NCBI RefSeq assembly: GCF_026571515.1
Contig: NW_026856878.1
Coordinates: 186,001-250,000 of the forward strand
Length of the DNA: 64,000 nt
Reading direction: 5' to 3'
From: Ruditapes philippinarum
Lineage: Eukaryota
Position 1 is the first letter of the stretch. The number at the start of each line of letters is the position of its first letter. The notes under the pieces were generated by a model that searched no databases, was not told where the DNA came from, and was given only the letters and a program-made list of their open reading frames with translations. Both the position numbers and the translations under genes were made by a program. Positions 859-59,989 of the stretch are shown here, piece by piece.

Positions 859-2165
859 AGGATGGCAAGCTGTGTTGTGGCAAGTTTTTTCCTTGAGCAA
901 GGAAATTGCACTTATTACTCTGTACTGATTGGTTCCAGGAATGGAATTGAGAATGTATCTATTAGCTTACTGCTACCTACACAATCAACTGTATAAACTA
1001 ATGTACCAGTATAGCAGTATCTTGTTCAAACCATTAATGTTGATGAATATGAAAAATATGTCAATATATTACATAATTACATAAATTGAGGCTAATTCTA
1101 AAGGAAATGTAATCAAACTCCTGTTTGTTTTCATAATTGAGATGTTTAAAGATTTTTTAAACTAGTAAATATATCCAAGTGCCAAAAGAAGCTAAATTTT
1201 AGCCCTGACAAAGACTATAAACTAGAGTAATGAGCCCATTTCTAAAAATAAGGTGAACAAACTTGATAAAAGAATGCTTGCAGCTGAAGTTTATAAATTT
1301 TATTGATTTACAAGTACAGGTACTTGAATATAAAGCATTTAAGTTTAATTGTTTGTAATATATAAGAATATTTATGCTATAAGAATATTTGTAATATAAG
1401 TATAATGTTAATACTGTAAATGTATAATGTGGGTCTCATGACCAAAAAATATCTATATTTAACAATTGGGCAGATGCAGATAAAAATCGATCAACTTGAC
1501 ATAAATACAAGAAATATATGATATATGATGACATTATTTTATTGGGAATAAAAATCACTGTGAATGTTATACTTCATTTCTTAATCCCTTAAACCTTCCA
1601 AATTTATGTAATGGATTTGCTCAGCTTTATATTTGGGTTAGTTCATTTTGAAAATGAAGGAATTTAATTATCAAAGTACAAAAACTGAGGTACCTGAACA
1701 CTCACTGTATAGAGTCTTTGTCATACTGCACATATGCTCGGGCTGGCCTGGTTCTATACTGGTGGTAAAGTCTAATAACTTTTGGTTCCTGTCAATTAAG
1801 GGTTAAAATGATGATAACAGTTAGTCATAGATCTTGATATACGATCTCATTAGACATGTATAATATTAGAATTACCCGACATTTTCTTAAAATAGAATCA
1901 AAATGTTGGTGTCAAGGTAAATTATTTCTTGTTTACCAGCGTGACACGTTCAAGTTCAGTTCTAAGTCACGTTCAGGTAGTTAAATTAATTAAACCTGGC
2001 ATCACGAAATGTTTGAATACAGAAATTTATAACTTACCATTTTTGTATAGTGACTGTCACATTTACCTGAAATATACAGATTTGCAGACACATTATAAAT
2101 AATGTCTCACTTATTTTGTTGTGTGTCGTTAATTTAATGCAGCTATACTTGTTTATATATTTCAG

Positions 2166-2327
2166 ACATACCGAGATTTTTTCACCAACATTGAGACAAC
2201 AAATATAGTCACGTTGCTCCTGTCTGTTGTTTGTATAGCAGTGTTGTATTGTACAGGTAGATTCATCAACCAGAATCCAAAACTTAAACCAAAGATGTTC
2301 ATGCCCGTACCCATTGAACTGATTGTT
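2166..2327 (+). CDS. SLC26 paralogue 1 exon (TYRDFFTNI...PVPIELIV)
   Basis: ttcag acceptor, gtaagt donor, 162 nt; same length as its counterpart at 26576-26737. Confidence 0.92.
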
Positions 2328-35446: not shown

Positions 35447-36455
35447 ACTGGTTGGAGAAAAAACCCTCCACTTAATAACTTAATTTTAGCAATATCTTTC
35501 TCATCTGTTGAAAATTTACGATTTTGACAAACATGAACAAACTTCGGTTTAAAGTTTTGCTACAAAAATTATTATGAAACTGGCTTTTCTTTATGAATGA
35601 GTATCCAAACATTGTCTTTATGGCCCTGAATGAGGAATCCAAACATTGTCTTTATGGTCCTGAATGAGGTATCCAAAACATTGTCTTTATGGTCCTGAAT
35701 TAGGTATCCAAAACATTGTCTTTATGGTTCTGAATTAGGTATCAAAAACATTGTCTTTATGGTCCTGAATGAGGTATCCAAAACATTGTCTTTATGGTCC
35801 TGAATTAGGTATCCAAAACATAGTCTTTATGGTCATGAATGGGGTATCCAAAACATTGTCTTAATGCCCCTGCATGAGGTATCCAAAACATTGTCTTTAT
35901 GGTCCTGTTTGAGGTATCCAAAACATTGTCTTAATGCTCCTGCATGAGGTATCCAGAACATTGTCCTTATGGTCCTGAATGAGTATCCAAAACATTGTCT
36001 TTTTGGTCCCGAATGAGGTATCCAAACATTGTCTTTATGGTCATGAATTAGGTATCCAAAACACTGTCTTTATTGTCCTGAATGAGGTATCCAAAACATT
36101 GTATCTATACTTTGACAGCAGATACAGTCAAAACTTCCAAATTTTTTAATCAAACACTACATGGAAAACCAGCCTAAATGATTGACTTTTACATATATTT
36201 CATTATTTTTTAAAGAAATTGACAAAGTTTGCGGGAAAACTATTTTAAAAAATATCTTTTTATATGACATTAAATTTTGAAAAAGACGTTAACCTTAAAC
36301 CCGAAAATTTAAAATTTTTTTAAACTTGAAAATTTTACCAAAAGCCGTCCCTTTTCTTTTTGACCAAGTAGATTTTTATTGGAATTTTTTTTAAAACAAT
36401 TAAAATTACCAACTGTTGAGGTTATATATGTGAAAGAGTAATTTCTCCGACCAGT
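35447..36455. mobile_element. ~1-kb TIR element containing a 35-bp tandem array
   Basis: Ends actggttggagaaa and tttctccgaccagt are inverted repeats. Confidence 0.6.
35595..36102. repeat. 35-bp minisatellite, about 14 copies
   Basis: Unit atgaggtatccaaaacattgtctttatggtcctga. Confidence 0.93.
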
Positions 36456-37573: not shown

Positions 37574-40500
37574 TTATTTACAGGGCTTATTTACAAACGA
37601 TTTCCACTTCCAAAGAACATGATTTCCGCAACAGATACCAAAACTAGGTGAAAAAACTTCTTTTCCACAACAGTAAGAGTCACCACCAAATTTCTTTGAT
37701 ACAATGGCACCGTCGCAACATAAATGTAGCCCAGGATCATAACAATCTCTTTGACAGCACGCAGTGTTATGTTTGTTTATGCTTATAACAACATTACAGT
37801 CACAGCAAATTTGTCGTGAACTATCCATAGTTTTGTTGCAGCAACAGCAATCATCATATTTGGTCGTTTTTTCAATAATGCGTCCTTCACAGCACAAACA
37901 TCGGTCTGGATCATAGCTTTTTTGATTACAACAACGCGTATTCGAACCGGCAAGTTTATCTTGTACAACACCATCGCAACACATTTCATTGTTGTCGTTA
38001 AAGCTAACACCATCACAGCAACGTGTTGTTTTGATTCCTTTCATTGGTTGTACAATTTCTGTATCTTTGTTATTACAGCATACATGCGAATAGGGATTAA
38101 ATGTGTCATTTCCACAACAAAGCAAATCATTTGTCATTGTCTTTTTCCTAACAGTTTCCTCACAGCACAATTCAGTCTTTAAATTTATGGGTTTACCACC
38201 ACAACAATCAGAACTTGAAATACCTCCAACTATATCATATAATATACCTTGACAACATATCTTTCTATTTACATTATAACTTATCTTTCCGCAGCAACGC
38301 GTGTTTTCAGGTTTTCCGCTCAAAATTTGGTTTGATTTCTCCTCACAGCATAGTTCAGTTTCAGGATTAAAACTTTCGTTTCCACAACAACTAAAATCAG
38401 TTTCACGAATTTTTCTAACAACGTGCCCCTTTTCACAACATAATTGAGAAAGAGGGTTAAAGGCGATGTCGCCGCAGCATTCAGCATTAGCACTGTGTTT
38501 TTCTATCACTTTGTCCAGACAACAAAGATGTGTGTCAATATTAAATGACATCATGTTACAGCATTGATGATCGGTCAGTCTCGATTTTTTAACTACAGTT
38601 TCATTGCAACACAGATCTAAATTTATATCATAACTTGTATGTTCACAACACGCTGTTGTGTTACTAAGTTTATCTTGTACAATGCCTCGGCAGCATATCT
38701 GCGTTTGTGTGTCATATGGCTCTTTGTTGCAGCAAGCATTATCGTCTTTATCATTTTTAGGATATAACTCATGGCCGTCACAGCATATATGAGTTCCTGA
38801 ATTATAACTTATTGCACCACAACACACTGATCGTCCTTCTATTTTAGGTTGAGGATTATCATTGCAGCATATTTCTGTATTTGTATTGAAGGAAATTTCG
38901 CCACAGCACCAATTATCGTCCTTTTTTACCCTTTTGCTCAGTTTATTATCACAGCATACATGCTTCTTAGAATCATAGCTCTTGGACAAACAGCAAAGGG
39001 TATCATCTCCTGCTACTTTCATGTTTGGTTTGCCATCACAGCATAACTGTGTAGCATCATTTAATGTTGTATTACCACAACAACAGTTGTCGCGCAAATT
39101 TACTTTATCTATTACTTTATTGTTGCAACATAAATGGGAATTTACGCTCATACTATTATTCCCACAGCAAATGCCAAATTCGACATTGTCGATTACATTA
39201 AGCGGCTTACCAGCGCAACAGATCTCATCACGAGTGTTATACGTTGTAAAGCCACAACAAAAATTATCGTCAATTGTTCTCTTTTTTCTGACATTACCTT
39301 GACAACAAATTTCATTCTTAGTGTCGTAACTTTGACTTTTGCAACATGCAGTATGACTTCTATTTTGTCGTTGTTGTACTCGATCACCACAACATATTTC
39401 AGTGTCAGTGTTAAAGGTATTTACCGTACCACAACAATGATTGTGTTCTTTATCTGATTTTTGCACTAAAAAGGTACCATCACAACATACATGATCATTT
39501 GAATTATAGCTGTACCTATCACAACAAAGTGTTGACTCCCCTTTCTGCAATTGTGGAACGTTGTTACAACATACTTCTTTAAGGGTATTGATCGGTTTGT
39601 TACCACAACAACTATTATCGGACATGTCTTTTTTTAATACTACTGAATCATCACAACAGATTTCCCGTTTTTCATCATAAACTTTCGTAGAACAGCATTT
39701 CAAAGATGAGTTTTTGTTTCTTTTGTACGGATTTCCATAACAGCATATTTCGTTGTTGATGTTAAAGGTCATGTTTCCACAGCAAGCATCATCAATTTCC
39801 GAATGTTTTTGAAATATATTGTGTCCACAACAAAGTTGACTTTTAGTGTTAAAACCTTTGTCGTAACAGCAACCTGTCCCATTTACTCCACCAATAAGAG
39901 GTTGTGGTAATCCTCCACAACATATTTCTAATTTTGCATCAAAAGCAGAGTTTCCACAACATTGATTGTGCTCAACGCCTCGTTTTTCATATAATTCTGA
40001 ATTACAGCAGACCTTTAAGTTTGGATTATAGCTTTTTGTTCCACAACATTCGCCGTTTAATCCACCTTCTCTGACAAATTTACCTTGGCAGCATATGTGT
40101 GTCTTTGTATTAAATGGCGAAGAACCACAACACCAATTGTCTTCAGTGTTAGTTTTAGAGACCACCCCGACATCAGTACAACAAAGTTCAATATCAGGGT
40201 TATAGCTTTTATTATAACAACATTTTGTTATAGCACCAGAAGTAAGGGGCTGTGGGTACATACTACTGCAACAAATTTCTTTTTCTGCATTTATAGTTTT
40301 TGCACCACAACACAAATTATCGTCTACCTTTCCTTTTGGTATTATATTGTTAGCACAGCACAAGTGAGATTCGGGATTGTAACCTATATGACCACAGCAT
40401 CTGTCAGCGGTAGTTGAACGATTCTTAACTAATGAGTCGCAGCATATTTCGTTCCTTGAATTAAATGTCGTGGTGCCACAACAGTACTCGTCGGTTGATT

Positions 40501-43500
40501 TATGTTTGGTCACCACTTTTCCATCACAACATAATTCGGTTTCCTTACTGTAACTGGTGTCCCTACAACAAGTATGCATCTCCCCTCCTGGTTGTGGTTT
40601 TCCTAAGCAACATACTTGGTCGACAGATGTTATAGGAACATCACCACAACAGGAATCGTCGGATATCGAATTTTTCTTGATAACATTATTGTTGCAACAA
40701 ATGTATTTTTGACTGTCATATCCCACAGCTCCACAACACATAAAGTAGTCAGTGGTCATAGCAAATGGGTTTCCTAAGCAACATATCTGTGTCTTAGAAT
40801 TAAAAGTAGCATAAAGTCCACAACAATGGTTGTCATCGGGATCGGATTTAAGTCGTAAGTCACCAGTGTCACAACATACTTTATACGAGGAATTATAAGC
40901 CTCCTTTCCGCAACACTTGTCTCCGATGCCTGGTTCATTTTCGCAACATAGATGGACATGGGCCTGCATTGATTTTATGCCGCAACAACAGTTATCACTT
41001 GCGCTTTCTTTTATTACAACCTTGTCGCGGCAGCATAATTGTGTAGAAGTGTTATAACTCATTTTACCACAACAGTTGGTGGTATCACCATAGCTAATCT
41101 GGACACGCTCGTCACAGCATAATTCATTTTTCAGATTGTATGTTTCATTTCCACAACAATAATCATCATTCAATTTATTCTTTCGCAAAACACCTCTAGC
41201 GTCACCGCAACATACCTCTTGTTTTGTATCGATCGCATGTTTGCCACAACAATCTATAAGTGAACTTGTCCGATAATGTTTTATTCCGTTACAACAAATA
41301 TCAGTTACGATATTCATGGGACGTTTTCGGCAACACACATTATCCATAGGAGACTCTTTTTGAACTACTTCATCATCACAACACATTTCTATGTGTGGGT
41401 TGTAGCTGTCAATACCACAACATTTTGTGACAAGTCCAGCAACTGCTTTGTTCGGAAAGGAGTCTGCACAACATATTTCTGTTTTCGTATCATATGGTTT
41501 TACACCACAGCACCAGTCGTCAGACGTCTTTGATTTCTTGTATAGGCGACTGTCACAGCATATATGTTTATGTGGATCGTATGATTCATTTTCACAGCAG
41601 CGGGTATTTTCTCCATAATTTGGCTGAACAACAGCATTACAGCAATATTCCGTTTTTGTATTGTATGGAGTTGAATTACAGCACAAGTTATCATTCCGAT
41701 GTCTTTTTTTAACCACATTATTGTCACAACATATAAAATTTTCAGAATCATAACTTACTTCCTTACAACAACGCGTCCTATCTTTCGACATTCTATGTTG
41801 AGGTACACCCATGCAACAAATTTCAGTCTCACCATGAAATGTACTCATTCCACAACAGCTATCGTCAATTCTGTTTTTCTTTTCTACTATTACACCAGAG
41901 CAGCATATATGTGTATGCATATTGAAACTGGTATCTCTGCAGCATGTTGTAGGGCCATCATATTTTATTTGTGGATTACCATCACAGCATACCTCATTTT
42001 CAATTCTGATTGGTGTCATACCACAACATATATTGTCTTGAATATGGCGCTTTTTGACAATTTTCATATCACAACAAAAATGTGTGTTAGAATTATAACT
42101 TTCACTTCCACAACATTTAGTCGCATGTTTAGCCATTATTTTGTTTGGAACATCGTTGCAACAAATTTCAGATTTTGAGTTAAATGTCGAATTACCACAG
42201 CACAAGTTATCATTTGAATTATTTTTGAGACGGATATCTTTTGGACCACAGCACATTTGTTTTGTTGTGTCAAAACTTAAATCAAAACAGCATCTTGCAA
42301 ATTGTCCTCCTTCAGCCTGGCTTGGTATTCCATTACAACATATTTCGTTTCTTAAATTGATTGAAGTTCTACCACAGCAGCAGTTATCACCAGTGCTTCT
42401 CTTACGAATAACTCTTTGATCACAACACATTTGTGACCTAGTGTCAAATGAAGCTTTTCCGCAACAGTCAGTATACCCATCACTATAACGTCTGTTATGA
42501 ACGCCATTGCAACAAAGTTCAGTTCTAGAATTAATTGTTGATGATCTACCACAGCATGAATCATCATTCTTATGTCTTTTTCTTCTTACACGACCTTCAC
42601 AGCACATTTGAAATCGTAAGTCATAACTCTGGTCGTTGCAGCATGAAGTATATTCATTACCAATTCTATTTTGCTTTTTTCCAAGGCAGCATATGTCAGT
42701 CAAAGAGTTCATCGGTTCACTAGCACAACAGCAATCATCATCATTGTCAGATTTCTTAACTACAGTCTGATCGCAACATAAATGGGTTTTAGAATTATAA
42801 CTTTCAGATAAACAACACTCTGTAAGTCTACCGCCCCGTTTTGGTTGTGGGCTTTTCCCTAGACAGCATACTTCTGTTTCCGTGTTGTAAGTGTTGTTTC
42901 CGCAACACTCATTATCAAAAATATCTTTCTTATCTGTAACAGCATTATCACAACATAACTGTATTTGTGAGTCATAGCTATAATCATTGCAACATTTTGT
43001 CTTATCACCACTATGTTTTATATCTACTCTTCCATTGCAGCATGTATGCGTTTGTGTAGTGTATGGTGTCATTCCGCAACACCAATTATTGCTAACGCTA
43101 CGTTTTTCTATAACTGAATTAGAACAACAAATATGTGTTTCTAAATTATAGCCACTTTCTTTGCAACATGCTACATTTGAAATTCCAGTAAATTTATAAA
43201 CGTTGCCATCACAACATAACTCGTTGCGAGGATCTGTTGTGTTACTAGTACCACAACATTGTTTGTCTTCAGGCTTTGACTTAATCCTTATCGTGTTATC
43301 TGGACAGCAAAGCTGGTTTCTAGTTCCGTAACTTTTATTTCCGCAACAAGCAGTATATTCTCCATCTACACGTTTATGTGGTTTTTCAAAACAACATATT
43401 TCTCTGCTTAAATCAAAAGTAGTTTCCCCACATCTAATGTCGCTATTTTCAGTGCGTTTATCATAAACAGTATTATAAGAACAAAGTTGTGTGGTCGGAT

Positions 43501-46500
43501 CGTAGCTCTTATGATGGCAGCATTGAGTATAATTACCTTTTTTAGGTTGTTTTGTACCAAGGCAACATATATGTTTTCGAGTGTCGATTGTTGTGATGCC
43601 ACAACACCAGTTATCTGTAAGGTCACCTTTCTTTGTGACAACAGTATCATAACAGCATAAAGATTGTGTTGAGTCATAGCTTTTGTTATGACAACAAAGT
43701 GTATGATGGTTAAACAGCGGATTTGGTGAATCCATACAGCATATTTCTGAATTAAAGTTAAATGTGGTCTCACCACAACATCCGGTGTCACCGTCTTGCT
43801 TCATTGTGACAACTTTATTATGACAACAAATGTTTTTTCTGGTATCATGACTTCTTGTTCCGCAGCATTCGTAAGAGCTTTCATTCTTTGGTTGAACATT
43901 TCCATCGCAGCAAAGTTGACTGCTTGAATGCATTGTTTTAGCTCCACAACATGTATCTTCATCAGAGTGATTTTTCTTTGCTACTAAACCATCACAACAC
44001 ATTTCATTAATAATGCTGTAACTCCTTTTACCACAGCAATGTGTAAAAATAGAATCCAATTTGTTTGTTACATGTTGATTGCAACAAATTTCTTTTGAAT
44101 CTTCGAATGTTGAATTACCGCAACATGAGTTATCGTTAATACTTCTTTTCTTTACAAGTTCTTCTTTACAACATAAATAATCGTCTGCATTGTAGCTTTG
44201 AAATCCACAGCATTTTGTATTTTCCCCTTTAAGTTTACTTGGATGGTATCCACCGCAACATAATTCAGTCCTAGGGTCAAATGTTTTTGAATTTCCACAA
44301 CAACTAGTGTCATTTCTGTTTCTCTTTTTAATTACACCTATATTACAACATAAGTATAATTCAGGGTCAAACGAAAGAATACCACAGCACTGGGAAGACT
44401 CATGTTCGTCTTTAGGCTGAGGCGTATGATTACAACATATTTGATTTCTTGCGTTAATTGTTGTATTTCCACAACATAATGTATCATGGCGAGAGGATTT
44501 GTTGATAACTTTGCCATCGCAACATAGTTGTCTGCGAGAATCAAATGTGCTTTTTGTACCACAGCATTGTTTGTCTCCTGAATTTGACTTAATTTTAATC
44601 GTCTGATCAGAACAACAAAGCTTGCTTCTAGTTTCGTAACTTCTATTTCCACAGCACGCAGTATTTTCTCCCACTACACGCTTATTTGGTATTCCATTAC
44701 AGCATATTTCTTTACTTAAATCAATGGTTGATTTTCCGCAAATTATGTCACTTTCTTCACTGCGTTTATAAGACAGTACATTCTTATAACAAAAGGTGTC
44801 TTCTGGGTTAAAGCTTTTTTGATGGCAGCATTGAGTATGTTTACCTAATTTAGGCTGTTTTGTACCAAAGCAGCACATATCTTTTCGGGTATCGATTGAT
44901 GTGCTTCCACAACACCAATTATCTGTACGGTTACTTTTGTTTATCACTACAGTATCATTACAGCACAAAGATAGTGTTGAGTCATAGCTTCTATTACGAC
45001 AACAAAGTGTTTCATGGCTAAACAGCACATTTGGTGAACCCATGCAGCATATTTCTGAATAAAAGTTGATTGTGGTCTCACCACAGCACCCATTGTCACC
45101 ATCTTGTTTCATTGTGACAACTTTATTATTACAACACATGGATTTTCTTGTATCATGACTTCTGGCTCCGCAGCATTCGTAAGAGCTTTCATTCTTTGGT
45201 TGAACATTTCCATCGCAGCAAAGTTGACTGCTTGAATGCATTGTTTTAGTTCCACAACATGTATCTTCATCAGATTGATTTTTCTTTGCTACTAAACCAT
45301 CACAACACATTTCATTAATAATGCTGTAACTCCTTTTACCACAGCAATGTGTGAAAATGGCATCCAATTTATATGTTACATTTTGATTGCAGCAAATTTC
45401 TTTTGAATCTTCGAATGTTGAATTACCACAACATGAGTCATCGTTGTAACTTCTTTTCTTTACAACTTCTTCTTTACAACATAAATAATTGTCTGCATTG
45501 TAGCTTTGGAATCCACAGCATTTCGTATTATTTCCTTTAAGTTTACTTGGATGGTATCCACCGCAACATATTTCAGTCCTAGGATCAAATGTTTTTGAAT
45601 TTCCACAACAGCTAGTGTCATTTCTGTTTCTCTTTACAATTACACCTTCATCACAACATAACTTTACTCTCATGTCAAACGAATGAATACCACAGCATTC
45701 GGTGGTAGACTCATGTCCGCGTTTAGACTGAGGTGTATAATTACAACATATCTGATTCCTTGAATTAATTGTTGTATTACCACAACATAATGTATCATCG
45801 GGAGAGGCTTTGTTGATAACTGTTCCATCACAGCATAGTTGTCTGCGAGGATCTAATGTGCTGTTTCTTCCACAACATTGGCTGTCCCCTGAATTTGATT
45901 TAATTTTAATCGTCTGATCAGAACAACAGAGCTGACTTCTAGCCCCGTAACTTTTATTTCCGCAACAAGCAGTGATTTCTTCCTCTACACGTGTATTTGG
46001 TATTCCATTACAGCAAATTTCTTTACTTAAATCAATGGTTGTTTTTCCGCAGATCATGTCACTTTCTTCACTGCGTTTATAAGAAAGCGCATAATTAAAA
46101 CAGAGAGAGTGTTCCGGGTTATAGCTTTTTTGATGGCAGCATTGCGTATGTTTACCTAATTTAGGCTGTTTTGTACCAAGACAGCATATATCTTTTCGGG
46201 TATCGATTGATGTGCTTCCACAACACCAATTATCTGTATGATTATTTTTGTTTATGATTACAGTATCGTTACAGCATATAGATTGTGTTAAGTCATAGCT
46301 TTTGTTAAGACAACAAAGTGCATCTCGGTTAAACAGCGGATTTGGTGAACCCATACAGCATATTTCTGAATTAACGTCGATTGTGGTCTCACCACAGCAT
46401 CCATTGTCTCCGTCTTGTTTCATTTTGACAACTTTATTATTACAACAAATGGATTTTCTTGTATCATGACTTCTGTTTCCGCAGCATTCATGAAAGTTTC

Positions 46501-49500
46501 CATCCTTTGGTTGAGCATTTCCATCGCAGCAAAGTTGACTCCTGGAATGCATAGTTTTAGTTCCGCAACATATATCTTCACCAGGGCGGTTTTTCTTCGC
46601 CACTAAACCATGACAACACATTTCATCAATAATGTTGTAACTCCTTTTACCACAGCAGTCTGTCAAAATACCACTGACTTTAGTTTGAACATATTGATCG
46701 CAACAAACTTCTTTTGAATATTCGAATGTAGAATTTCCGCAACATGAGTCATCATTATAACCTCTCTTCATTACAATTTCTTTTTGACAACACAGATAAT
46801 CGTCTGCATTGTAGCTTTGGAATCCACAGCATTTCGTATTATTTCCTTTAAGTTTACTTGGATGGTATCCACCGCAACATATTTCAGTCCTAGGGTCAAA
46901 TGTGTTTGCTTTTCCACAACATCTAGTGTCAGCTCTGTTCTTCTTTAAAATTAAATCTTCATCACAACATATGTGTACTTCAGGGTCGAAAGAATGAATA
47001 AAACAACATTGGGAAGACTGTCCGCTTTTAGACTGAGGTGTGTAATTACAACATATTTGATTCCTTGAATTAATTGTTGTATTACCACAACATAATGTAT
47101 CATGGGGAGAGGCTTTGTTGATAACTGTTCCATCACAGCATAGTTCTCTACGAGGATCAAATGTGCTATATGTATTACAACATTGGCTGTCTTCTGAATT
47201 TGACTTAATTCTAATCGTCTTATCAGAACAACAAAGCTGGCCTCTAGCCCCGTAACTTTTATTTCCACAGCAAGCAGTGTTTTCTCCCTCTAAACGTATA
47301 TTTGGTATTCCATTACAGCAAATTTCTTTACTTAAATCAATAGTTGTTTTTCCGCATATTATATCACTTCCTTCACTGCGTTTATAAGAAAGAGAATGAT
47401 TAACACAAAGAGAGTTTTCGGGGTTATAGCTTTTATGATTGCAGCATTGGGTATGTTTACCTAGTTTAGGCTGTTTTGTACCAAGACAGCAAATATCTTT
47501 TCTGGTATCGATTGATATGCTTCCACAACACCAATTATCAGTATGATTATTTTTGTTTATAATTACAGTATCATAACAGCATAGAGCTTTTTTGGAGTCA
47601 TAGCTTTTGTTATGACAACAAAGTGTATATTGATTAAACAGCACATTTGGTGAACCCATACAGCATATTTCTGAATTAAAGTCAATTGTTGTCTCACCAC
47701 AGCACCCTTGGTCGCCATTTTGTTTCTTTTTGACAACTTTATTTTTACAACAAATTGATTTTCTTGTATCATGACTTCTGTTTCCGCAGCATTCATAAAA
47801 GTTTCCATCCTTTGGTTGAACATTTCCATTGCAGCAAAGTTGACGGCTGGAAAGCATTGTTTTAGTTCCACAACATATATCTTCATCAGAGCGATTTTTC
47901 TTAGCTACTAAACCATCACAACACATATTATCAACAATGCTAAAACTTTGTTCACCACAGCAGTCTGTGAAAATACCATCGACTTTATTTTTAACATATT
48001 GATTGCAACAAATTTCTTTTTTGGCTTCAAACGTGTGATTTCCACAACATGAGTCATCATTGTAACCTCTCTTCTTTATAATGTCTTCTTGGCAACATAA
48101 ATAATTGTCTGCATTATAGCTTTGGAATCCACAGCATCTGGTATTATCTCCTTTAAGTTTTCTTGGATGGATATCTCCGCAACATATTTCAGTCCTCGGG
48201 TCGAATGTTGCCTTTTTTCCACAGCAGCATGTGTCATTTCTATTTCTCTTTCCGACGACACCCTCATCACAACATAAATGACTTTTAGGGTTGAAAGAAT
48301 GAATACCACAACAATGGGTCAAATCACCTCCGATTTTCGGTTGCGGTGTATCATCACAGCATATTTGATCTCTTGAATTAAATGTTGTATTTCCACAACA
48401 TGTTGTATCATGACTGGAAGCTTTCTTTACAACTGTTCCATTACAACATAGTTCTTTTGCCGGATCTAAAGACTTATTATTGCAACAACGAGTATGATTA
48501 CCAGATATTCTTCTATTAACATAACCTAAACAACATATGTCCTCAGTCGTGTTCATGCTAGCATTGCCACAGCAACAGTCATCATTTTTATGTTGTTTAG
48601 TAACAATGGTATTGTTTTCACAACAAAGTGATCGATCCTTGTCGTAACTTTGTTTTCCGCAACAATCAAACTTCTGTAAGTTTCCAGTTTGTGGATTTCC
48701 ATCGCAGCATATTTCATGCGGAGCCTCAAATGTAGTATTGCCACAACAGCCATTATCATTTAAATCATTTTTCTTTACAACCTTGCCATTACAGCACAAA
48801 TGTGTGTCAGAACTGTAGCTTGATTCTGCGCAACAGAGCGTACTCGTTCCATATTTCCTGTCTGGAATATTGTTACAACAAATTTCGTTTTTACTACTAT
48901 ATGTCTTATTACCACAACACCAATCATCTTCTGAGCTAAGTTTTTCTAAAATGAAATTTCCATTGCAACATAAATGGGTAGCAGAAGAGTAACTTTCCGT
49001 TTTACAACACAACGATTCATCACCTGATATTTTAGTCTGTCGTATGTCATTGCAACAGATGTGTTTCAATGGATTGAATGTTTTATTTCCACAACATGCA
49101 TTATCGTCTGCATGTTCTTTCAAAAGAAGCTGTGTATCATTACAGCAAATTGCTGACATTTTATTATAACCCTTAGAGCCACAACAGTCTCCTGTATCTA
49201 TATTTACTTCGTATGGAATACCTTCACAACACAGCTCCTTATAAGTATCAATTGTCGATTCATGCCCGCAGCAACCATTATCTCTTTCATCCCTCTTGCG
49301 CCTTACCTTATCATCACAACAGATATATGTTGTCGTATTATAGCTAACGTTCCCGCAACAGGTAAATGTTTCACCATTTTTCTGTGGATTCCCGTCGCAA
49401 CAAATTTCGTTACTAGACATGGTAGTATTTCCACAGCATATGCTATCTATTTCTGTATTTTTCTTTACAATTTTACCTGCACAACACAACTGAGTACTTG

Positions 49501-52500
49501 GGTTATAGCTTTTGTTTTTGCAACATTTTGTGTCTTCCGAATTTTTGGTCTTTTTTAGTTGCTTGTAATGACCGTCACAACAAATTTCTCGTTTTGTATT
49601 GAATGTTTCTTCACCACAACACCAGTCGTCTGAATGTTCTGATTTCTTTCTTATTTGTCCATCACAGCACAATTGTGTTTCTATGTTGTAACTTTCATTA
49701 TAACAACATTTATATGTATCCTTATTTGCTACGTTTTGGGGTATGTTTGAGCAACAAATACTTTTCTTTGAATTCATTGACCGACCACCACAACACCGAT
49801 TATCATCCGGATGATCCCTTTGAACAAGTTGCTTTCCATCGCAGCATAACTGCATTTTAGAGCTGTAAGAATTTTGGAAACAGCACATTGTGTCATTGCC
49901 TCCAATACGTTGTTGTTTGTTTCCCATACAACAAATATCCTTCTGGTTGTTCATTGAGGTATTACCACAGCAACAGTCGTCCTGGTCTGACGTTTTATAC
50001 ACAATTTCTCCATCACAACATATCGAGTCTTTTGTATTGTATCCAATTCCATGACAACACTGCACATTACCACCCCCCTTTTCCGGCTTTCCGTTGCAGC
50101 ACAGTTCAACATCGGTGTTAATAGTTGTGTTGCCGCAACATGAGTCATCTTCTGAGTGTTTCTTATTCACAACATTCCATGCCCCATTTATTAAAGTCTG
50201 GCAACATATGGAATTTCTAGAGTCATAACTTTTGTTATGACAACACTGTGCATGTTCACCACCAATTTTATCATTAGGAGTGTTTGAACAACATATTTGT
50301 GATTTAGTGTTCATAGTGTTACCTCCACAGCACACGTTATCACTTTGTCTTTTCTTTTTTATAAGAGTTGTCCCATGACAACAAATATGTATATTTGGGT
50401 CAAAACTGTTTGTTTTACAGCATTTTGTTTTATGTTTGCCAACAGCAGGTTCTGGATTACCATTGCAGCAAATTTCGTCAGCGCTATTAAACGATTTATT
50501 ATTGCAACACCAATTATCACTGTGTCTCCGCTTAGTAATTACATTACCATCACAGCATATGTGGCTGCTAACATTGTATGAGAGACTTTGACAGCAGCCT
50601 GTTTTTGTTTGACCACCAATTAATGGTTGCGGACCCTTTTCACAACATATTTCTTCGTTTGAGCTCATAGTTGTATTCACACAGCAACCGTCATCAGCAG
50701 CAGATTTCTTTTTTCTTATTTCCAAATTCTCACAGCACATCTCTTTCCTGATACTATATGCTCTATTTCCACAGCAGTCTGTGAAATCTCCGTCTACTTT
50801 TGACTGACGTATGTCCATGCAACAAATTTCTGTTTTGGTATTGATAGAAGAATCTTCACAGCAGCTATCGTCATTTACACTTTTACGGTCGAATAGTTTC
50901 ATATTGCAACAAATCTTTTGCGTTTTGTCGTAACTTGTGTTTCCACAGCACCGCGTATCTTTTCCAATCTTTGGTTGCTTAAATTGACCATCACAACACA
51001 TGTGAACACCCGTGTCATAAGTGTCATTACCGCAACACCAATTATCGGCATTTCCAGTCTTCTGCATCAATTTGTTATTACAACACAAATGACTGTTTAA
51101 GTTATAACTGTCCTTTCCGCAACATCGAGTTTTGTTTAGATTATCATATATAGGTTGTACATTCATGTTGCAACATGTTTCATAATATGAATTAAATGTC
51201 TCTCCACCACAGCACCAATTGTCGTCTGGTTTAGATTTCTTTGTAATTTGATTATTACAACAAATATGGGTTTTGGAGTTATAGCTTTGTTTCCCGCAAC
51301 ACATCCAATCTTCACTGAAACTAGCTTGTGGGATACCTTGGCAACAAATACGATTTGAACTATACATCGTTGTATTTCCACAGCAATAATCGTCTTGTAA
51401 TGTCGTTTTCTTTTTTATTTCATTCGAGCAGCATAAATTACTTTGAATGCTATAGCTAGTATCTCCGCAACAAGAAGTTGGTTCTTTAAATTTCTTATTT
51501 CGTTTACCAAGGCAACAGATATGAGTCTTACAATTCATTGTTGTATCTCCGCAGCAACAGTCGTCGTTTTCATGTACTTTTAAGAATACTCTATCATTAC
51601 AACATACATATTTCTTAGAATCGTAACTTTTTCTGCCGCAACAAAAATAGTCATCGTTAATTTTAGGTTGCGGCGCACCATCGCAGCACATTTCTTTCAG
51701 AGAATCCATTGTTTTATTGTCACAACAACAGTCGTCAGATAAACTACGTTTTTGTAAAATCCGCTTTCCCTCACAGCAAACGTATTTTGTTCGGTCATAA
51801 CTTTTATCTAAACAGCATCTTACATCATTTGCCATTGGCGCATCTTGTATAGTATTCATACAGCATATTTCAGTGTTCGGGTTCATTGACAATAATCCAC
51901 AGCAACATGAGTCATCTGAATTCCTCTTCTGTATACGCTTCCCGTCACAACAAAGATATTTTCGCGAGTCATAGCTGTTGTTTCCACAGCACTGTGTGAA
52001 CTCTGTACCTATTAACATCTGTCGATTACCATCACAACATATTTCTTCATTAGCATTTATTGGAACTTGACCACAACATACCCCTTCACTATCGTCGTTT
52101 TTAGACACAATCTTACCATTACAACAGAGGTGTTTATTGATTGCTGCAGCTTTATCCTCACAGCAAAAAGATGTTTCCACATTCGAAACTTTTCTTGGTA
52201 TACCCTGACAACATATGTCACTTTGTGAATTCATTGTAGAATTCCCACAACAAATATCATCTTTTAAAGATCTTTTCTCAATGACAGTATCAAAACAACA
52301 CATTTGCGTTCGGTAGTTGAAACTTTGTCCTTTACAACAAACTGTACTATCAACAAATTCGTGAATTGGTTGTGGGTTACCATAGCAGCATGTCTCGATG
52401 TTTGTGTTCATACTTGAGCTTCCGCAACACCAGTTATCATTTTTATTATTTTTATTTATGATCAAACTATTGCAACATATATAGTTATCTGGATCATAAC

Positions 52501-53517
52501 CTTTGCGTCCACAACATTTAAAGTGATGACGATTAGTTCGATTTGTTACTTCACCTTCACAGCAAATGTGTGTGTCTCGGTTAAAAGTAGATATTCCACA
52601 GCACATATTGTCCTGTGTGTTATTTTTTGAACTGATTGTTATTCCGTCACAACAAATATGTGTCTGAGGATCAAATGACCTGTTTTTACAACACTTCATG
52701 TTTCGAGATGTAATTTTACCACCACAGCACATTGATTCCTTTGAATTATAGCTTTGTTTTCCGCAGCAGCGTGTACCTCGTTTGAACAGTTTTCCACGTC
52801 GACCATTACAACATATCTGAGTTTTAGGATTATATGTTCCATGTCCACAGCAACCAAGATCCCTTTTGCTCGATTTCTTAACAATAGTTCCATGGCAGCA
52901 AAGATGTTTTCTACTGTCATAACTTCTTTTCCCGCAACATCTCGGAACAGATTTTCTCCTACCTCTATGTTGTACCTCGCCATCACAGCACATATCTTTC
53001 TTACTATCAAAACTGTTCGTACCACAGCATTGTGTTCGTCCCTTATACTTTGGTTGTACGGTTTCATTACAACATACAGCTTTATCTGGATTAAAAGTCC
53101 TTTCCCCACAACAACACGAGTCCTTGAGATCACCTTTTGTCATGAGTTTCTTACCATCACAACAGACCTGCTTGTGTGGGTCGTAACTTTTCTTTTTGCA
53201 ACACATAGTGTTATTCACATTTACTAATGGCTGAACATCATCGTCGCAACATATTTGAGTACGTGGATCAAGATTATGTCTTCCACAACATAATGATATA
53301 TTCCCTCCATTTCTTTGTTGGACATGATCGTTACAGCATATTTTCTCGGTTGGATCGAAAGCGGTACCATTGCAACAGCATGTAAGATTTCCTGCCACCG
53401 CTGTTTGAAGCTTTCCATTACAGCAGGCATGTTTGTTTACATCAAATAGTGCTATATAGCTGCCATTGTTGTCACAAGAGTAGCATTTTGCATGAATAGA
53501 AGATTGTAGCAGGTTTC
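37574..53517 (-). CDS. 15,944-nt single coding exon of the galaxin-like protein
   Basis: Uninterrupted 5322-codon ORF in the track; acceptor ttcaattctatag|GA at 53517. Confidence 0.95.
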
Positions 53518-56500
53518 CTATAGAATTGAATGAAACAATCATAAAGATAAAAATGAAATTAAAGATAAAAGCGCGCTCAGGCTTAAAATATTAATCATTA
53601 AACAATCTTAGATGTCCACGTAAACATCTGCAGACTATGGATGCTGTTTAAACCTTTTAATTGAAAGCATATATCTTTCAAAATTTACACATGTAAAGGT
53701 GTTCCTTGATACTTAGGGGTGGGGGGGGGGCTATGGTGATGATGAATTTTATCACTGATACAGACAGAGTGTTTTGAAGGAATGAAAATATTTTGATATT
53801 TTTCGTCATGGTAATTGTCTTGCGTAGGAAATGTCCAGCATTTTAGATATTTTTAAACTTAGCTATCAAAATAAATCAAATTTAAAACCATTTAAATTCG
53901 GAATATACTTCTTTTCATTTTCGTTTATATTTTAGTAATAAAAAGTATTATATCCGTGTGTAAAAGTAAACTAGGGCAGGTGACATAGGAATTGTACTGG
54001 TGATGGCGGTGGTTTCTGCTATTCTGCAAGAAGTTTGGAAAAAAAGTACCTTGACAGCATAATCTTTCATACGGATTGTAACTGTTGTGGCCACAACAAT
54101 AGGTATTATTTCCAGCGATTCGTGGTTGAATCTATAAAATAGATGTAATTACAAATATGAACTTTAAAATGAGCAACGTTTATCAGATTAAAGTCATTGT
54201 TCTAATTCTGTTGATGGTGATATAACTTACAGAAATTTATGTAAGGAAATGTTAATAGATTATGTTTTTACCACGTAAATGAAGGAAAGGAATGACCAAG
54301 TAATGCTGAAATAGTTATTTATACATCTTTCATCTTTTATACATGTTGAATTTACAACTCACGATATGACCGCAACAAATTGACTTTCTCGGGTCGAAGC
54401 TATCTAATCCACAGCATTGTGTACGTTTGGCAGCTACTAATGGAGACGGGTTAGTATTAGCACAACAAATATCTCTAGCCGGATCATACGATACGCTACC
54501 GCAACACTGTGTCCGTTTTCCTGCAATCTTTGGCGCAACCGAGAAACGGCAGCATACCTGAGTCTCAGGGTTAAACTCCTGTAGCCCACAATAATTCCCT
54601 ATATGAAAATAAAGACAACATTCAAGATATAAGAGTGGCTTTTGGCTTGACGGTTTAAACGCCATAAAATCCAAATAAATTACATGTATATTTGTCAATC
54701 CCAACATATACACTTATCATATATGAAACTATAAAACATAAACATACGCTATTGTGATACAAAAAACATATTTCAACGTCTATATAGTATTACCAAAGAC
54801 GTTGAAATATGAACTTTTTTCAAATCAGCATACCCCGGTATATTAAGTGTATGTACTGAGATTGACAAATACACAAATTATTTGGATTTAAGGCGTTCGG
54901 AGCCCTAATTGTCTATGGGCACTATTGATAGTTTCATGCTTATATCTCAAAATTCTCTTATATTTAGTGTATTTTAAAGTTTCAAAAAAAAATATTGGCT
55001 AGAACCACCTTATGCTTCTCTTCTTTTGCTTTTTAGCCATAAGCAGGGTAATATGTCGTGATTTAGTTTTTGAATGGAAATTAAGTACTATTCTGTTTAC
55101 ATTTTCCTTTTTGTGATAAATTAATTTCACATTCAGCACTACTTTTTTAAGGTGTTAAGCACCTTACATGCTCTAAATCTAAATTCAAAACATTATAAAA
55201 CACATGTTTACCCTTTCTAAAGAGAAAACCAATCTTTATTTAGGCACAGTTAATACGTAGTGCTTAATTTTCATTCAGTACATTTTTTTCGGCCTTGAAT
55301 ATCTATGAAATGATATATAAAACTGTTTTATATTATAAATCGGTCATGAAATGGCCTTCATAAAGAGTATTATGAGACACTTCAAAGACAAGTATGCTAA
55401 AATCTAGATTTTGTCCTATTGGCCTGTATAATATGACGATGTTTTCCCCTGTGCCGTCACTTGAAAGTCTGAGGGACTTTTTCGCTAAATCAGGAAGAAA
55501 TTTAAAAAAAAATGGTATGAACAGATGCATTTAAGGAAAATGATTGGGATATTTTCCCTACAGAACCATGTTATTTTAAGGAGCCTGTATTTAGAACTTT
55601 TCCTCCTTGAAACACCTGTCACAATTAGGAAAAAGTCGACGTATTAAGTCGGTGAGATTGCATTTTAATTTTAAATAATTTCCAGTTAAAACAAATCAAG
55701 TTTAGGTATGATTTGCATACATGGGCACTGAAAAAAGGACAATTGTTTGAAATGGGTGGGGTAGTGTATCATTTTTATACATAACTCAACATTTTGAGTA
55801 CAATCAATATTTTTACGTGTGATTTGTGAGCTTAATGTTATCATTTGTTTCTTAAAAATAATCAACAGGAACACATTTTTCATAGAGATAATACTATATA
55901 TCATTACAAGTACAATTCTGAAAAGAGCACTTCAGATATCAGAATTTTGTTTAGATTTTACATAAAGGTGTCCCTTAAAAGCATATAAATAGCATATGCT
56001 GTCAATTTTTCATAGCCTCATAGTGCCCATTGGAGTGGGGGGGGGGGTGTTCATACCTTAAGTGGGATTGCTTTTCACTTTATTCAAGTATATGTATGTT
56101 TGCCTTGAAGGTCCTAAAAAGTTATGTTTGTAATAGACTTTCATAGTATTATTCATGTGCTTAAGCTTTCCTGAGCAGCATATAGTAGTATAGAGTCAAA
56201 CATTTGTCATCTGCCGTTAACCATACCTAGTTCATGTTCGCATATATAGGAAGTCACTTTTATTTCCTCTAGTCTGATTTGACAATGCCCAGAACTATAA
56301 ATTTGAGAGCTTTTGAATTTAACATTGTCTAGTGGACGTCTGAAGAAATGCATAAATCATGTCTCTATGCCCAAAATACTGGCCCGTCCAAGGGTCGCAT
56401 TGACTTGTAATTAGAAGAAATCTAAATTTTCTCCTCACCAATTCAAAGTTCAGTGGTTAGACAGTCGATATGATTAATCACATTGTGGCCCTCTACATGA

Positions 56501-58266
56501 ATGAAACATGGTCTAGACCCTAGATACTTGGCATGTAAGTTACCCCTCCCCCCATTGAACCTCTACTAAAGTTTTATAAATCCTTGCCCTTTTGTCTAGC
56601 AATGGTCCCCTGTCAATGTAATCCAATGACATACGTTTGCATTGAAAAATTTAAAGCGGCATGCCTCCACATTCATGCTAATTTTAATGAAAATTTTGAT
56701 ATTGTATTTAAAAGTAAAATATTGTGAAGTGAACAAAGAAAGTATTTTACTAATTACAGACTGAGCTTTTAATCCATGACGATTTAGCTCTTACTGCGTA
56801 AGTCACGCAGTAAAAATACATGTATAGTGACAAATACTGCAAAATCAGTCATTTATTGGACATAACATGTAAAATATAACTTGAATCTTAAATCTTTTGA
56901 CTCATCTTAAATCGTACATTTTCATCAAGTTTTTTTCTCCTCTTAAATTGGAGGCTATAAGTTTTAAAGCTTTTCCAGAAATAGATCATAGATGAGTATT
57001 CAAGATACTTCACAAAACTCGCCACTTCTCTTGAATGTTGTGTATATTCTTTTATCTTTATTAAATTGTTTTATTAAAAATTAATACACTGACAAATGTA
57101 CATGTTATATGACAAATTTATATGTATACATGCTATATAGTGAAAATGTACAGAAAGACTGATTAATTGCTATCGTATAAACTAGACTAGACAAAGAGTT
57201 ATTTGATTAACTGACCCCATGTTAATTAGATGCACATTTTAAGGTATTTAAAGCTGAAAACAGATCTGTTAAAGATACCCATTTAGCTATGAATAAGATA
57301 ACCAAGGCATACAATGATCTTGTAAACTCGTTTATGGCAGGATGAGCATTTGTCGGTAAAACAAATAGTCAGCTGCACTGGTATATCAGAAGGTGGTGTG
57401 CAAACCTTTCTGAATAAAGAACGAGTTTACACCTTAGAACGTTTTGTGTTATCCCCATTGACTCACTATGCAGCAAAAATGTAACTGCAATATTAAATAG
57501 ATGACCAAACTAATTTACACACTAATTGAATTAAAGATGAACAGCTCATAATAAACAATCGGGGCTGAGTGATCAACTTTATAAAATTTGTTCGAAATAT
57601 TTAAAGACCAATTTATTAGCAACCTTGTCCATCTGCTCATACTGTCACCGGGTGGATATTTTAAAGCACCCGCAGTTGAACTGGTTTCCTGTGACTTCTT
57701 CTGTTTATATTTCTAAAAATCCTTTCTGCAGAAAAAATCAATTCCAGAACTTCTTCTGGCAGGACCATTTATCCTTGCCTCTTGTAGATATCAAAAGATG
57801 CTTTTTAAAAGCTTTTTTAATACTTTTAATATATTTTTGGGACTGAGTTAAAAAGTAAGTAAGAAGTGTTTCTGTCTATGGCGAATATGTTGAAGGTTTA
57901 TATAAGGAATACTGTTGACAAAACGTAGCTTTTAAGTAACGCGAACCAAAACATACTCAATTCAACAAGCAGGAACTTTCACTGACGTTTTCAATTCTTT
58001 TTATAGTGTGTTTATTCAACATGAAATATCTGTTGTCTAAAAGTAAAAAAAAAACCCAACCAACAACCAAAAATAAATAAATAAATAAATAAATTAATTA
58101 ATTTATTAATTTTTCAATTAATAATGTTTATAAATAACTTACCCTCAACGCCCATTAGGTTGAAATTGAAAGAACGAGATTCCCTAGATTTAAATCCATA
58201 TGTTACATATGCACATAGAATTATATTAATAACTATAATTAAAATGTTTGTAACGTTTGGTAACAT
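37574..58266 (-). CDS. Giant secreted galaxin-like di-cysteine repeat protein, about 5,461 aa, 4 coding exons
   Basis: Exons 58266-58143 (signal peptide, ends phase 1), 54598-54363 (phase 1 to 0), 54131-54050 (phase 0 to 1), 53517-37574 (phase 1 to TAA); total 16386 nt in frame. The repeat CCG-x3-(Y/F)(N/D)-x5-CC-x(12-15) is the galaxin-type (usherin Cys-rich-like) repeat. Confidence 0.88.
43230..48466 (-). repeat. Coding higher-order tandem repeat, 4 x ~1.31 kb (436/435/437/436 aa)
   Basis: An equivalent anchor (DPxxxLCC) recurs at 48462, 47154, 45849, 44538 and 43230; spacings 1308, 1305, 1311, 1308. Confidence 0.92.
54050..54131 (-). CDS. Galaxin-like gene exon 3 (IQPRIAGNNTYCCGHNSYNPYERLCCQG)
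   Basis: ttttatag acceptor, AAG|gtact donor; exactly one repeat unit; not in the ORF track. Confidence 0.88.
54363..54598 (-). CDS. Galaxin-like gene exon 2 (NYCGLQEFNPETQVCC...SICCGHI)
   Basis: catatag acceptor, ATC|gtgagt donor; three repeat units. Confidence 0.9.
54655..54898. mobile_element. Fold-back (MITE-like) element in intron 1 of the galaxin-like gene
   Basis: Nested inverted repeats aaatccaaataa/ttatttggattt, atttgtcaatc/gattgacaaat, catatttcaacgtc/gacgttgaaatatg. Confidence 0.7.
58143..58266 (-). CDS. Galaxin-like gene exon 1, signal peptide (MLPNVTNILIIVINIILCAYVTYG-FKSRESRSFNFNLMGVEG)
   Basis: aaaATG, hydrophobic core of about 14 residues, TYG/F cleavage-like site, consensus GAGG|gtaagt donor in the phase that exon 2 requires. 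Confidence 0.75.
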
Positions 58267-58351
58267 TTTTCAACTTATAACACTCACAATGTCAATGATA
58301 AAAGTCACATGTTTTCAACAATTAAATTTAATGGTACTAAATCTGCAACAA

Positions 58352-58386
58352 ATACTGCATATCATGCGTTATTCCATCCTTTTATA
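58352..58386 (-). promoter_or_regulatory. Core promoter of the galaxin-like gene: TATAAAAG box and Inr-like GCAGT; predicted TSS about 58356
   Basis: TATAAAAG at 58386-58379; the A of GCAGT lies 30 nt downstream and 90 nt before the ATG. Confidence 0.6.
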
Positions 58387-59989
58387 TCTTTTCTTTGACT
58401 ACGTGACCGTAAAAAATATCTTCAAGTATTTGCAAACACGTGTTTACAATAATTCTATATTTTGCGTATTTTAACGATTCAACGTTTTCTTTGCACTTCG
58501 GAACGTATATGAATGAACTGATGAGCTCAATTTGAAAATTTCATATATCAGAATGTATGATGTCAACAAAAGATAAAGTATATCTACCCAATAAAAATAT
58601 TATTAAACAATGTTGTGTACTATACTTTAAATCTGTTGACTGACGCATACTTTGTTGAAAAATATATACTATAATATGATTTCATGCAAAACATGTGTAA
58701 AGGAAAACGAAATGCCACTTTGTTTGATAAAAGTTGTGTTTAAAACTTGCCGAAATTATCGAAAATGAATCATCATTTTTTGGATTAAGTTGACGATTCA
58801 AGAATTTCAATGAATTATGACAATCATGTCACGAGTTCAGTTTACGAACTGTCTTGGTATTACAGGGCAGTCTTAAAGCACATGTTAATAATAAAAACAA
58901 TTCTCTCCAAATACGTAAAAACAGTATACATTTGTACGGACAGGGTATACTAGTATATGTCCTTTATAGCCCGCCCCTTGCTCAGTTTGGCATAATAGAA
59001 AAACTTTACATACGCAATAGGTGAGATTTTTTATCAGAATATCCTATGAAATATACTTATAAATAAAATGTATGTACAGTTTAATTTTTATCTAAATGAA
59101 CGTTTACATATATAAAAAGATAAAATAAGAGAAGTTATCAATTGTTCACATTACGTTGATAGAAGTAATGAGAGTTATTATCTAGTATTAATAGTATGGG
59201 TAAAAATCGAACTGGCGGCCTAACTCCATTTATTAAAGAGTACCACAGCGGAAATTCACTTTCCTCACTGCTTGTGCTAAGCTATTTTGCCGTCTATGTA
59301 ATTGTAGAAATAGACGGCTTGATCTACAGGTCTACCAAGTGCGGGTTAAAGTGTCAACGAGTCTACAAAAGAGGATCAAGTGTCTGTCTGGTAGACTCCT
59401 CGACGCTCAACAAATAGGAGAAAAGATATATCCAACTCAAGACAGCACATGTATTATATTACGGTACGATGTAATAATGCACACATATTCACATTCACAT
59501 TTAAAGCAACAATCCCATAGATAAGCCGGAACAATATGCCAAAAATAAATTTGAAATTTACATAAATTTATAGAAATGATTATTCACCTATATCATACAA
59601 ACCCAAGAGGGTTTCCTAGTTTTCGAATCAAACAGCAATCGCGTGACTAGCGGAATAAGATATATTAATAGGTTAATAAAGTTAATATGTTTATTGTTTG
59701 TATAAAAACATTTAAAAAAAACAAATAAGAAAACCCACAAAACCTATGAAATCTGAAGGCGTGCTGCTTTAAACATTAGAGATTGTATGAGAACGATGTG
59801 TCCTAGTTCGCGGTAAGCTCGAGAGGGTCATGTTATATTTGAGATACCCTTTTAACTTGTGTAAACATTCGTATTTAGATAGTTTCATCTATTTTAGAGA
59901 TGTAGTATGGAACGCCAAAACTTCCTTTTATTATGAGAAACTGATATAATTATATTTGGTAAGTTGGAATTTGGCTGATATGAGTAAAG

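Follow-up and report, generated by a model that had tools for sequence, protein, structure and literature searches.

A four-exon gene of Ruditapes philippinarum for a giant, putatively secreted protein built of galaxin repeats

What is encoded by a reading frame of 5,322 codons without a single stop in the genome of a bivalve, and what might so long a protein be for? The frame lies on the minus strand (37574..53542) of a 64,000-nucleotide stretch of the Manila clam Ruditapes philippinarum (NCBI RefSeq assembly GCF_026571515.1, contig NW_026856878.1, positions 186,001 to 250,000), which we call the window and whose first letter is position 1 in what follows. In DNA of ~36% G+C, a frame of this length (5,322 amino acids) cannot have arisen by chance, and both G+C content and GC skew shift exactly across the stretch that it occupies. 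We found that it is part of a spliced gene of the galaxin repeat family with three further giant paralogues in the same genome. On balance, and with modest confidence, we favour the reading that this functional gene codes for a giant secreted protein that forms a disulfide-stapled extracellular rod with a structural role.

The giant frame is the last exon of a gene of four exons (Table 1), whose coding sequence totals 16,386 nt and yields 5,461 amino acids from an ATG at 58266. A scripted frame check showed that the reading frame remains unbroken through all joints and ends at the stop codon of the giant exon, and the three introns are all of the GT..AG type on the minus strand (CT..AC on the plus strand). 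Exon 1 provides a 5' untranslated region of at least 26 nt, the start codon (58266-58264) and the hydrophobic N-terminus of the protein (residues ~8-24), a stretch of ~15-19 residues followed by T-Y-G. The ATG at 53542, first codon of the mechanically delimited frame, falls inside intron 3 and is not the start codon of the gene. The joined four-exon protein was used for the frame check and for composition, while the database and fold searches were queried with exons and exon pieces. A preliminary description of the locus, made from the DNA letters, had estimated ~5,460 aa, ~180 repeats, ~14% Cys with 700 or more Cys residues, and 16 kb in one exon, and these estimates proved close (5,461 aa, ~185 units, 13.8%, 755 Cys and an exon of 15,944 nt).

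Four sequencing runs were aligned over 52500-58400, a region that includes the 5' kilobase of the giant exon. The contigs assembled from two of them (X1 and X5, from different studies) skip exactly three segments, which are the three introns, and they differ from the window by substitutions only, with no coding indels seen. Spliced contigs from two studies thus document a transcript at the 5' end of the gene, whose absence the preliminary description had named as fatal to its proposal. In the raw reads of another RNA-seq run (X21, ~4% of the run read), exon sequence has ~2-3 reads per orientation and the introns have ~0. Sampled words of 48500-58400 (~55% exon) are present at 31-48% in 14 RNA-like runs from six studies, and 53-76% of the words of these 5' 9.9 kb are present in DNA-like runs from three studies. 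Within intron 1, a short dispersed repeat (~56637-56833) is covered very deeply by each of the four RNA runs (word depth of 2,639 in X1), and many of its reads continue into unlike sequence on both sides, as would be the case for an element resembling short interspersed nuclear elements or miniature inverted-repeat transposable elements that is transcribed from many loci.

Repeat arrays mis-assemble easily, and neither the giant protein nor its three giant paralogues were found with exon-piece queries in the protein collections searched, although other NCBI proteins of the species are present there. Both facts would suit an assembly artefact or a decaying repeat array without a functional gene. 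However, Tandem Repeats Finder (period limit 500) detected no tandem DNA repeat in the exon, and DNA self-BLAST found a single internal similarity, a super-repeat at 43193-48469 with four 1,308-bp copies that are 79-86% identical (at the protein level, an offset scan recovers it at 436, 872 and 1308 residues). Since there are no near-identical DNA copies, the assembly cannot have inflated the length by copying, an outcome that the preliminary description had also named as fatal. Among the four 436-aa blocks, synonymous divergence (dS) is 0.29-0.67 and the ratio of nonsynonymous to synonymous divergence (dN/dS) is 0.30-0.41, with 57 of the 60 Cys columns invariant. These values, together with the 536 of 539 Cys kept in one of the paralogues (see below), support purifying selection on the coding sequence, as had been claimed from the letters. 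The 5,322 codons free of stops, the splicing and transcription, the intact state of the four paralogous loci and the presence of the 5' 9.9 kb in DNA-type runs of three studies also speak against an artefact. We therefore consider the gene real and functional, and the artefact or pseudogene reading essentially excluded, its residual probability being very small.

Judged from its profile matches, the protein belongs to the galaxin-like repeat family PF24748. Galaxin_repeat is the only Pfam family found, and it covers every piece of the frame (E values of 1e-55 to 1e-291 and 186-951 bits for pieces of 322-1000 aa, with a cut-off of 28 bits), in line with the galaxin-type repeat proposed earlier. 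The full-length protein has 755 Cys (13.8%), arranged in 362 CC, CCC or CCCC sites plus eight degenerate single-Cys sites, which gives ~185 units; the frame itself holds 355 di-Cys sites and only 15 isolated Cys. Successive di-Cys sites are 13 and 15-17 residues apart in strict alternation, which makes the unit ~29 aa long (CCx14CCx11). An alignment of 36 in-register eight-unit segments from the giant gene and its paralogues revealed a higher-order dimer of 58 aa, with the consensus CC x6 K x4 D x2 CCG xx T x N xxx E I for unit A and CC x G x P Q P xx G xx T x CCG xx S Y D x5 for unit B. The composition is uniform along the chain and, with Galaxin_repeat as the only Pfam family, the hallmarks of gel-forming mucins or VWD-type proteins (VWD, C8, TIL and CTCK domains, Pro/Thr/Ser-rich stretches) were not found. 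Without its first 24 residues, the protein would have a mass of 604 kDa before glycosylation.

The sole hydrophobic window of 19 residues is at the N-terminus and there is no other segment resembling a transmembrane (TM) helix, which agrees with the earlier claim of an N-terminal signal followed by neither TM segment nor other domain. The confinement of hydrophobicity to the N-terminus, the 103 N-x-S/T sequons and the abundance of Cys point to an extracellular protein. With a pI of 7.5 and a net charge of ~+24 over 5,437 residues, the chain has the character of neither an acidic mineral-nucleating protein nor a cationic peptide. Exon 2 (54363-54596), and only exon 2, has a match to the carbohydrate-binding family PF10645 (Carb_bind) that falls below threshold (21.4 bits against a cut-off of 25 bits), so that it is not assigned to this family. 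The nearest galaxin cluster of the ESM Atlas has PF10645 in 12% of its members; the signal may hint that the first units bind sugar, or may merely reflect a common Cys pattern.

Is this gene a singularity? A six-frame scan of the 1.41-Gb assembly with the PF24748 model gave 152 matches, the giant locus among them. The repeat occurs at several loci, four of which have giant open frames, including that of the window (Table 1). The first and last 400 residues of the four giants are collinear at 40-59% identity, all four have a short CY.C linker close to the beginning of the big exon, and their C-terminal modules resemble each other. Exons resembling exon 2 or exon 3 lie upstream in at least C10745 and C6990, and C10745 also has a further 3' exon. 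The four loci are paralogues rather than haplotype copies. The giant is therefore one member of a small gene family and not a lone oddity, a fact not available to the preliminary description. Clusters of smaller galaxin-repeat genes are found on C7910 (855-884 kb), C5416, C5390, C5737 and C15548.

The comparison with C2025, the closest of the paralogues, shows how the array has evolved. In steps of 300 residues, the two proteins are collinear over their full length, with 50-60% identity in register and ~40% at the best off-register position, except that residues ~2100-3400 of the window protein fall back onto residues 1660-2285 of C2025. The window gene thus has the same architecture as C2025 except for three additional 436-aa blocks, and these account for the difference in length (5,322 - 4,005 = 1,317). 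A global alignment of the two collinear parts, ~3,800 residues in total, has six gap runs and 57% identity (50% outside Cys), with 536 of the 539 window Cys conserved. Similarly, the two ends of C6990 are collinear with those of C10745, and the large difference in length between these two lies internally. Collinearity unit by unit between paralogues implies that the long array is older than the gene duplications, and the excess of in-register over off-register identity implies that it has not been homogenized by concerted evolution. With so few indels, each unit is maintained individually, while length changes by gain or loss of whole blocks. An old array whose units are kept nearly free of indels is the strongest argument for a single folded object in which length matters.

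Table 1. Positions of the exons, introns and super-repeat of the giant gene in the window, and of the four giant open frames in the assembly.
Feature	Sequence	Position	Strand	Size	Description
Exon 1	window	58143..58292	-		spliced X1 contig (58142-58292 joined to 54597); contig ends at 58292
Intron 1	window	54599..58142	-	3,544 nt	GT..AG; joint in X1 and X5 contigs; depth 0 over most
Exon 2	window	54363..54598	-	236 nt	first galaxin units; X1 and X5 contigs; Pfam Galaxin_repeat E 1.1e-13, 51.6 bits
Intron 2	window	54132..54362	-	231 nt	GT..AG; joint in X1 and X5
Exon 3	window	54050..54131	-	82 nt	one galaxin unit; X1 and X5 contigs
Intron 3	window	53518..54049	-	532 nt	GT..AG; joint in X1 and X5
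Exon 4	window	37574..53517	-	15,944 nt	coding in one piece; stop codon 37574-37576; ~180 galaxin units as 58-aa A/B dimers
Super-repeat in exon 4	window	43193..48469	-	4 x 1,308 bp	four copies of a block of 436 aa, 15 units
Window gene	C5365			5,322-aa open frame	13.9% Cys
Paralogue	C10745	178665-192776		4,704-aa open frame	13.8% Cys
Paralogue	C2025	60678-72692		4,005-aa open frame	14.3% Cys
Paralogue	C6990	485595-492266		2,224-aa open frame	14.7% Cys

What shape would such a chain adopt? AlphaFold2 models of eight units, built from the 36-row alignment, have a mean predicted local distance difference test score of 95.1 (at least 93.8 in all five models) and a predicted template modelling score of 0.73. 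The model consists of beta structure throughout: each 29-aa unit contributes four short strands, which form two tight hairpins, and each CC doublet closes the first strand of its hairpin, ahead of a two-residue turn. Foldseek found no structural relative of the model in the PDB (best E 2.6, TM-score ~0.1), and an independent VIA-align search of 48,161 chains reached a best Z of 2.0; elongated repeats are difficult for global structure aligners. As neither these tools nor a profile search of PDB sequences gave an acceptable match, the galaxin repeat has no solved structural relative in the libraries searched. Two candidates were set aside: the PDB sequence match 21nr ('TLP-IPT', E 5.6e-5), a compositional one to a Ser/Thr/Lys-rich repeat without CC doublets, and the clostridial CROP repeats among the Foldseek results, which have E > 2 and TM-score ~0.1 and merely show that hairpin solenoids exist.

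Neighbouring residues of a strand point to opposite faces, so the two Cys of a doublet should bond different neighbours, one in the previous hairpin and one in the next. We infer from the model that the disulfides would make a continuous ladder from neighbour to neighbour along the chain. One observation fits such a ladder, if weakly: the block of the super-repeat contains two consecutive doublets, 17 residues from each other, that are both reduced to a single Cys in all four copies, whereas C2025 retains both Cys. At 12 CCC sites (motif D-D/N-C-C-C-G, full-length positions 194-4959), a third Cys precedes the doublet, at a position that is variable elsewhere (Y, S, G, R, L, H, F or W). All 12 are conserved in C2025, which adds nine more, and the extra Cys could be free thiols or intermolecular cross-links.

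The reading that we favour can be put together as follows. A signal sequence would direct the ~185 units into the secretory pathway, and the ~604-kDa chain would be secreted. Each unit would fold into two tight beta-hairpins with a Cys-Cys doublet ending the first strand of each, and the doublet would bond the previous and the next hairpin, making one continuous disulfide-stapled stack. The resulting rod would be stiff, resistant to proteases and N-glycosylated. At ~0.3-1 nm per stacked hairpin, its length would come to very roughly 0.1-0.4 micrometre, and it might serve as a long scaffold or cable in an extracellular matrix or secretion (the framework of shell or periostracum, mucus, or another secreted matrix), with length itself as the selected property. 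The preliminary description had likewise supposed a disulfide-locked filament, with shell, byssus, mucus, egg matrix or microbial control as conceivable uses. We suggest a structural role because of the architecture, the conservation of units by position, the almost complete lack of indels, the neutral charge of the chain and its resemblance to giant modular matrix fibres. It is possible, though we hold this more tentatively, that the four giants define an unannotated class of single-chain cables of sub-micrometre length, each a disulfide ladder of ~370 hairpins, in a fold that lacks a solved structure, whose length would change as blocks of 15 units are gained and lost; they would be a load-bearing or spacing element of a bivalve extracellular matrix that annotation has systematically missed.

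Several points weigh against this structural reading. The alignments over 52500-58400 show transcription and splicing at the 5' end of the gene and not a full-length mRNA of 16.4 kb, and a second raw RNA run (X23) has no reads, so that expression is not ubiquitous. The N-terminal hydrophobic segment, a putative signal peptide, could instead be a signal anchor. Only one of the 12 CCC sites has an obvious local partner for its third Cys. The paired loss of Cys that would fit the ladder amounts to one evolutionary event. Finally, the galaxins characterized so far are tied to calcification and antimicrobial action, not to cables.

The antimicrobial side of the family leads to another reading, in which the giant would be a protein of immunity or microbe control, either a huge multivalent protein that binds or agglutinates microbes in the haemolymph or mucus, or a polyprotein from which cleavage at dibasic sites would release many antimicrobial galaxin peptides, as proposed for squid galaxins. 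Peptides of EsGal1 and EsGal2 inhibit bacteria, and their genes are expressed in epithelia facing the symbiont (PMC12773714). In the Manila clam itself, a transcript annotated as 'galaxin', not assigned to a particular galaxin gene, rises 3.45-fold in haemocytes after exposure to Vibrio (PMC4234419). Dibasic pairs are also enriched in the giant (44 KR against 18 expected) at a fixed loop position 8-10 residues before the doublet. However, only five sites are of the furin type (R-x-K/R-R), and cuts in the loops would free nothing if the hairpins are disulfide-linked to their neighbours. The giant is also near neutral (pI 7.5), whereas EsGal1 carries +21.5 on a small protein (PMC12773714), and conservation unit by unit, nearly without indels, suits a single folded array better than a set of interchangeable peptides. 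We consider the immune reading rather unlikely.

Similarly doubtful, in our opinion, is a dedicated matrix protein for shell building that would form a functional locus with adjoining anion transporter genes of the SLC26 family. Galaxin was isolated from coral skeleton (PMC2726143), and the galaxin-like cysrichin of Hyriopsis is expressed in the mantle and affects the shell (PMC10045328). Exons of two SLC26/SulP genes adjoin the giant gene on the same contig (~25146-26216 of the window and C5365:182250-191994). In contrast, no SLC26 exons were found on the contigs of the three giant paralogues. Paralogue synteny thus does not support the idea of an SLC26-galaxin locus, as the linkage lacks conservation and may be due to chance. 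The pI of 7.5 is not acidic, as opposed to 4.5 in coral galaxins, and a literature search found no report of a galaxin-type protein in clam shell proteomes.

Some other features of the window and the assembly are recorded here. Five full-length intronless SulP open frames (534-870 aa) lie elsewhere, on C6246, C1975, C10506, C4684 and C15579, and are possible intronless copies or foreign or contaminant contigs. Tandem repeats resembling minisatellites at 268-822 and 5039-5656 produce repetitive pseudo-frames on both strands, and a 35-bp sequence is repeated three times (36000-36102) a short way past the stop codon of the giant gene. An intronless HSP70 gene of the assembly agrees at all 639 residues (100% identity) with the NCBI protein 'heat shock protein 70 B2-like' of R. 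philippinarum, and the next matches, from Mercenaria, reach 90-93%, which confirms the genome as that of this venerid bivalve. On many contigs (e.g., C6295, C314 and C8230), there are also single-exon open frames, dozens in all, that match positions ~83-352 only of the HSP70 profile, as if a divergent HSP70 subfamily had expanded greatly. In the mitochondrial COX1 gene (C15874:14424-15761), TGA occurs six times in frame (invertebrate code) and about a dozen codons are ambiguous (X); the best library matches of this gene are 73-78% identical. R. philippinarum is known for doubly uniparental mitochondrial inheritance, and the ambiguous bases of this contig could reflect mixed mitotypes.

How far does the giant exceed what is known of its family? 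Characterized galaxins have 163-660 aa (PMC10045328, PMC2726143), so that the giant is far longer than these, as the preliminary description had claimed, and a literature search found no report of a giant galaxin. It also exceeds several times over the length of every repeat-only galaxin in the libraries searched; the preliminary description had allowed for known orthologues of similar size, and no repeat-only protein of comparable size was found there. A word-indexed search limited to proteins of 2,927-9,313 aa gave a single match, ACF0H5_015127 of Mactra antiquata (5,282 aa), also a bivalve protein with galaxin repeats and the only match of comparable length. Unlike the giant, this protein is a mosaic that mixes galaxin repeats with VWA and F5/8 type C domains; Cys makes up 6.2% of it, its 123 CC doublets are scattered in blocks and its tail is free of Cys, and the alignment covers 37% of the query at 23% identity. 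When 1,200 residues of the array were compared exhaustively by HMMER with 1.84 billion cluster representatives of any length, 712 relatives were found, and none of the best 150 exceeds 1,413 aa, 56 doublets or 46% identity. Those named among the 20 matches examined are uncharacterized proteins of sea urchins, starfish, a crinoid, a sea cucumber, an acorn worm, Nematostella and a centipede. These echinoderm, hemichordate, cnidarian and centipede proteins are the best sequence matches (29-46% identity), are composed largely of galaxin repeats, and are the longest such proteins among the best 150 (e.g., Diadema antillarum XP_071504971, 1,150 aa; Patiria miniata XP_038073526, 1,210 aa; Strigamia T1JGZ0, 1,413 aa). 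All are unstudied predictions and, with at most 56 CC doublets against 362, differ from the giant. The nearest cluster of the ESM Atlas, one of mollusc galaxin-repeat proteins, is of 617 aa.

This is an extreme form, and a four-gene subfamily, of a known repeat family. Galaxins are often cited in work on corals, molluscs and squid symbiosis, yet they have neither a solved structure nor an agreed mechanism, and ~185 units in one conserved chain suggest that the galaxin repeat is a stacking, rod-building module for which this protein is an extreme test case. For bivalve biology, four very large, putatively secreted proteins are added that are absent from the protein collections searched; because of this absence, they may also be missing from the databases used in shell, mucus and immune proteomics, where their peptides would stay unassigned. 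A disulfide-laddered rod of beta-hairpins with tunable length would also be a useful scaffold for protein engineering.

Among characterized relatives, the coral galaxins of Galaxea fascicularis and Acropora millepora share with the giant a signal peptide (putative in the clam), tandem repeats of ~30 aa with two di-Cys, and PF24748, and have a comparable 12-13% of Cys (PMC2726143). However, they are shorter (338-660 aa against 5,461); coral galaxins are acidic (pI 4.5) with a dibasic propeptide site, and an acidic domain occurs in the galaxin-like ones, whereas the giant is neutral, has no extra domain and has ~17 times more units. By its length and its pI of 7.5, it falls outside galaxins sensu stricto (about 300-340 aa, pI ~4.5, dibasic propeptide site; PMC2726143). 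EsGal1-10 of the squid Euprymna scolopes are likewise mollusc proteins with the same di-Cys tandem repeat, epithelial secretion and a beta structure predicted by AlphaFold (PMC12773714), but they have at most seven repeats and are strongly cationic, with antimicrobial repeat peptides, while the giant is neutral. Cysrichin of the bivalve Hyriopsis cumingii is Cys-rich (14.7%), has a di-Cys repeat and is termed galaxin-like; it differs in its 163 aa, its five repeats of a different consensus and its role in mantle and shell, established by RNA interference (PMC10045328).

Parallels to the architecture proposed here also come from outside the family. In Drosophila Dumpy and in SCO-spondin, hundreds of small disulfide-locked modules in one chain form a very long extracellular fibre. 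Their modules (EGF/DPY, TSR/LDLa) are unrelated to the galaxin repeat, with no kinship in sequence or fold, and unlike the giant they have anchoring domains, but the working principle would be alike.

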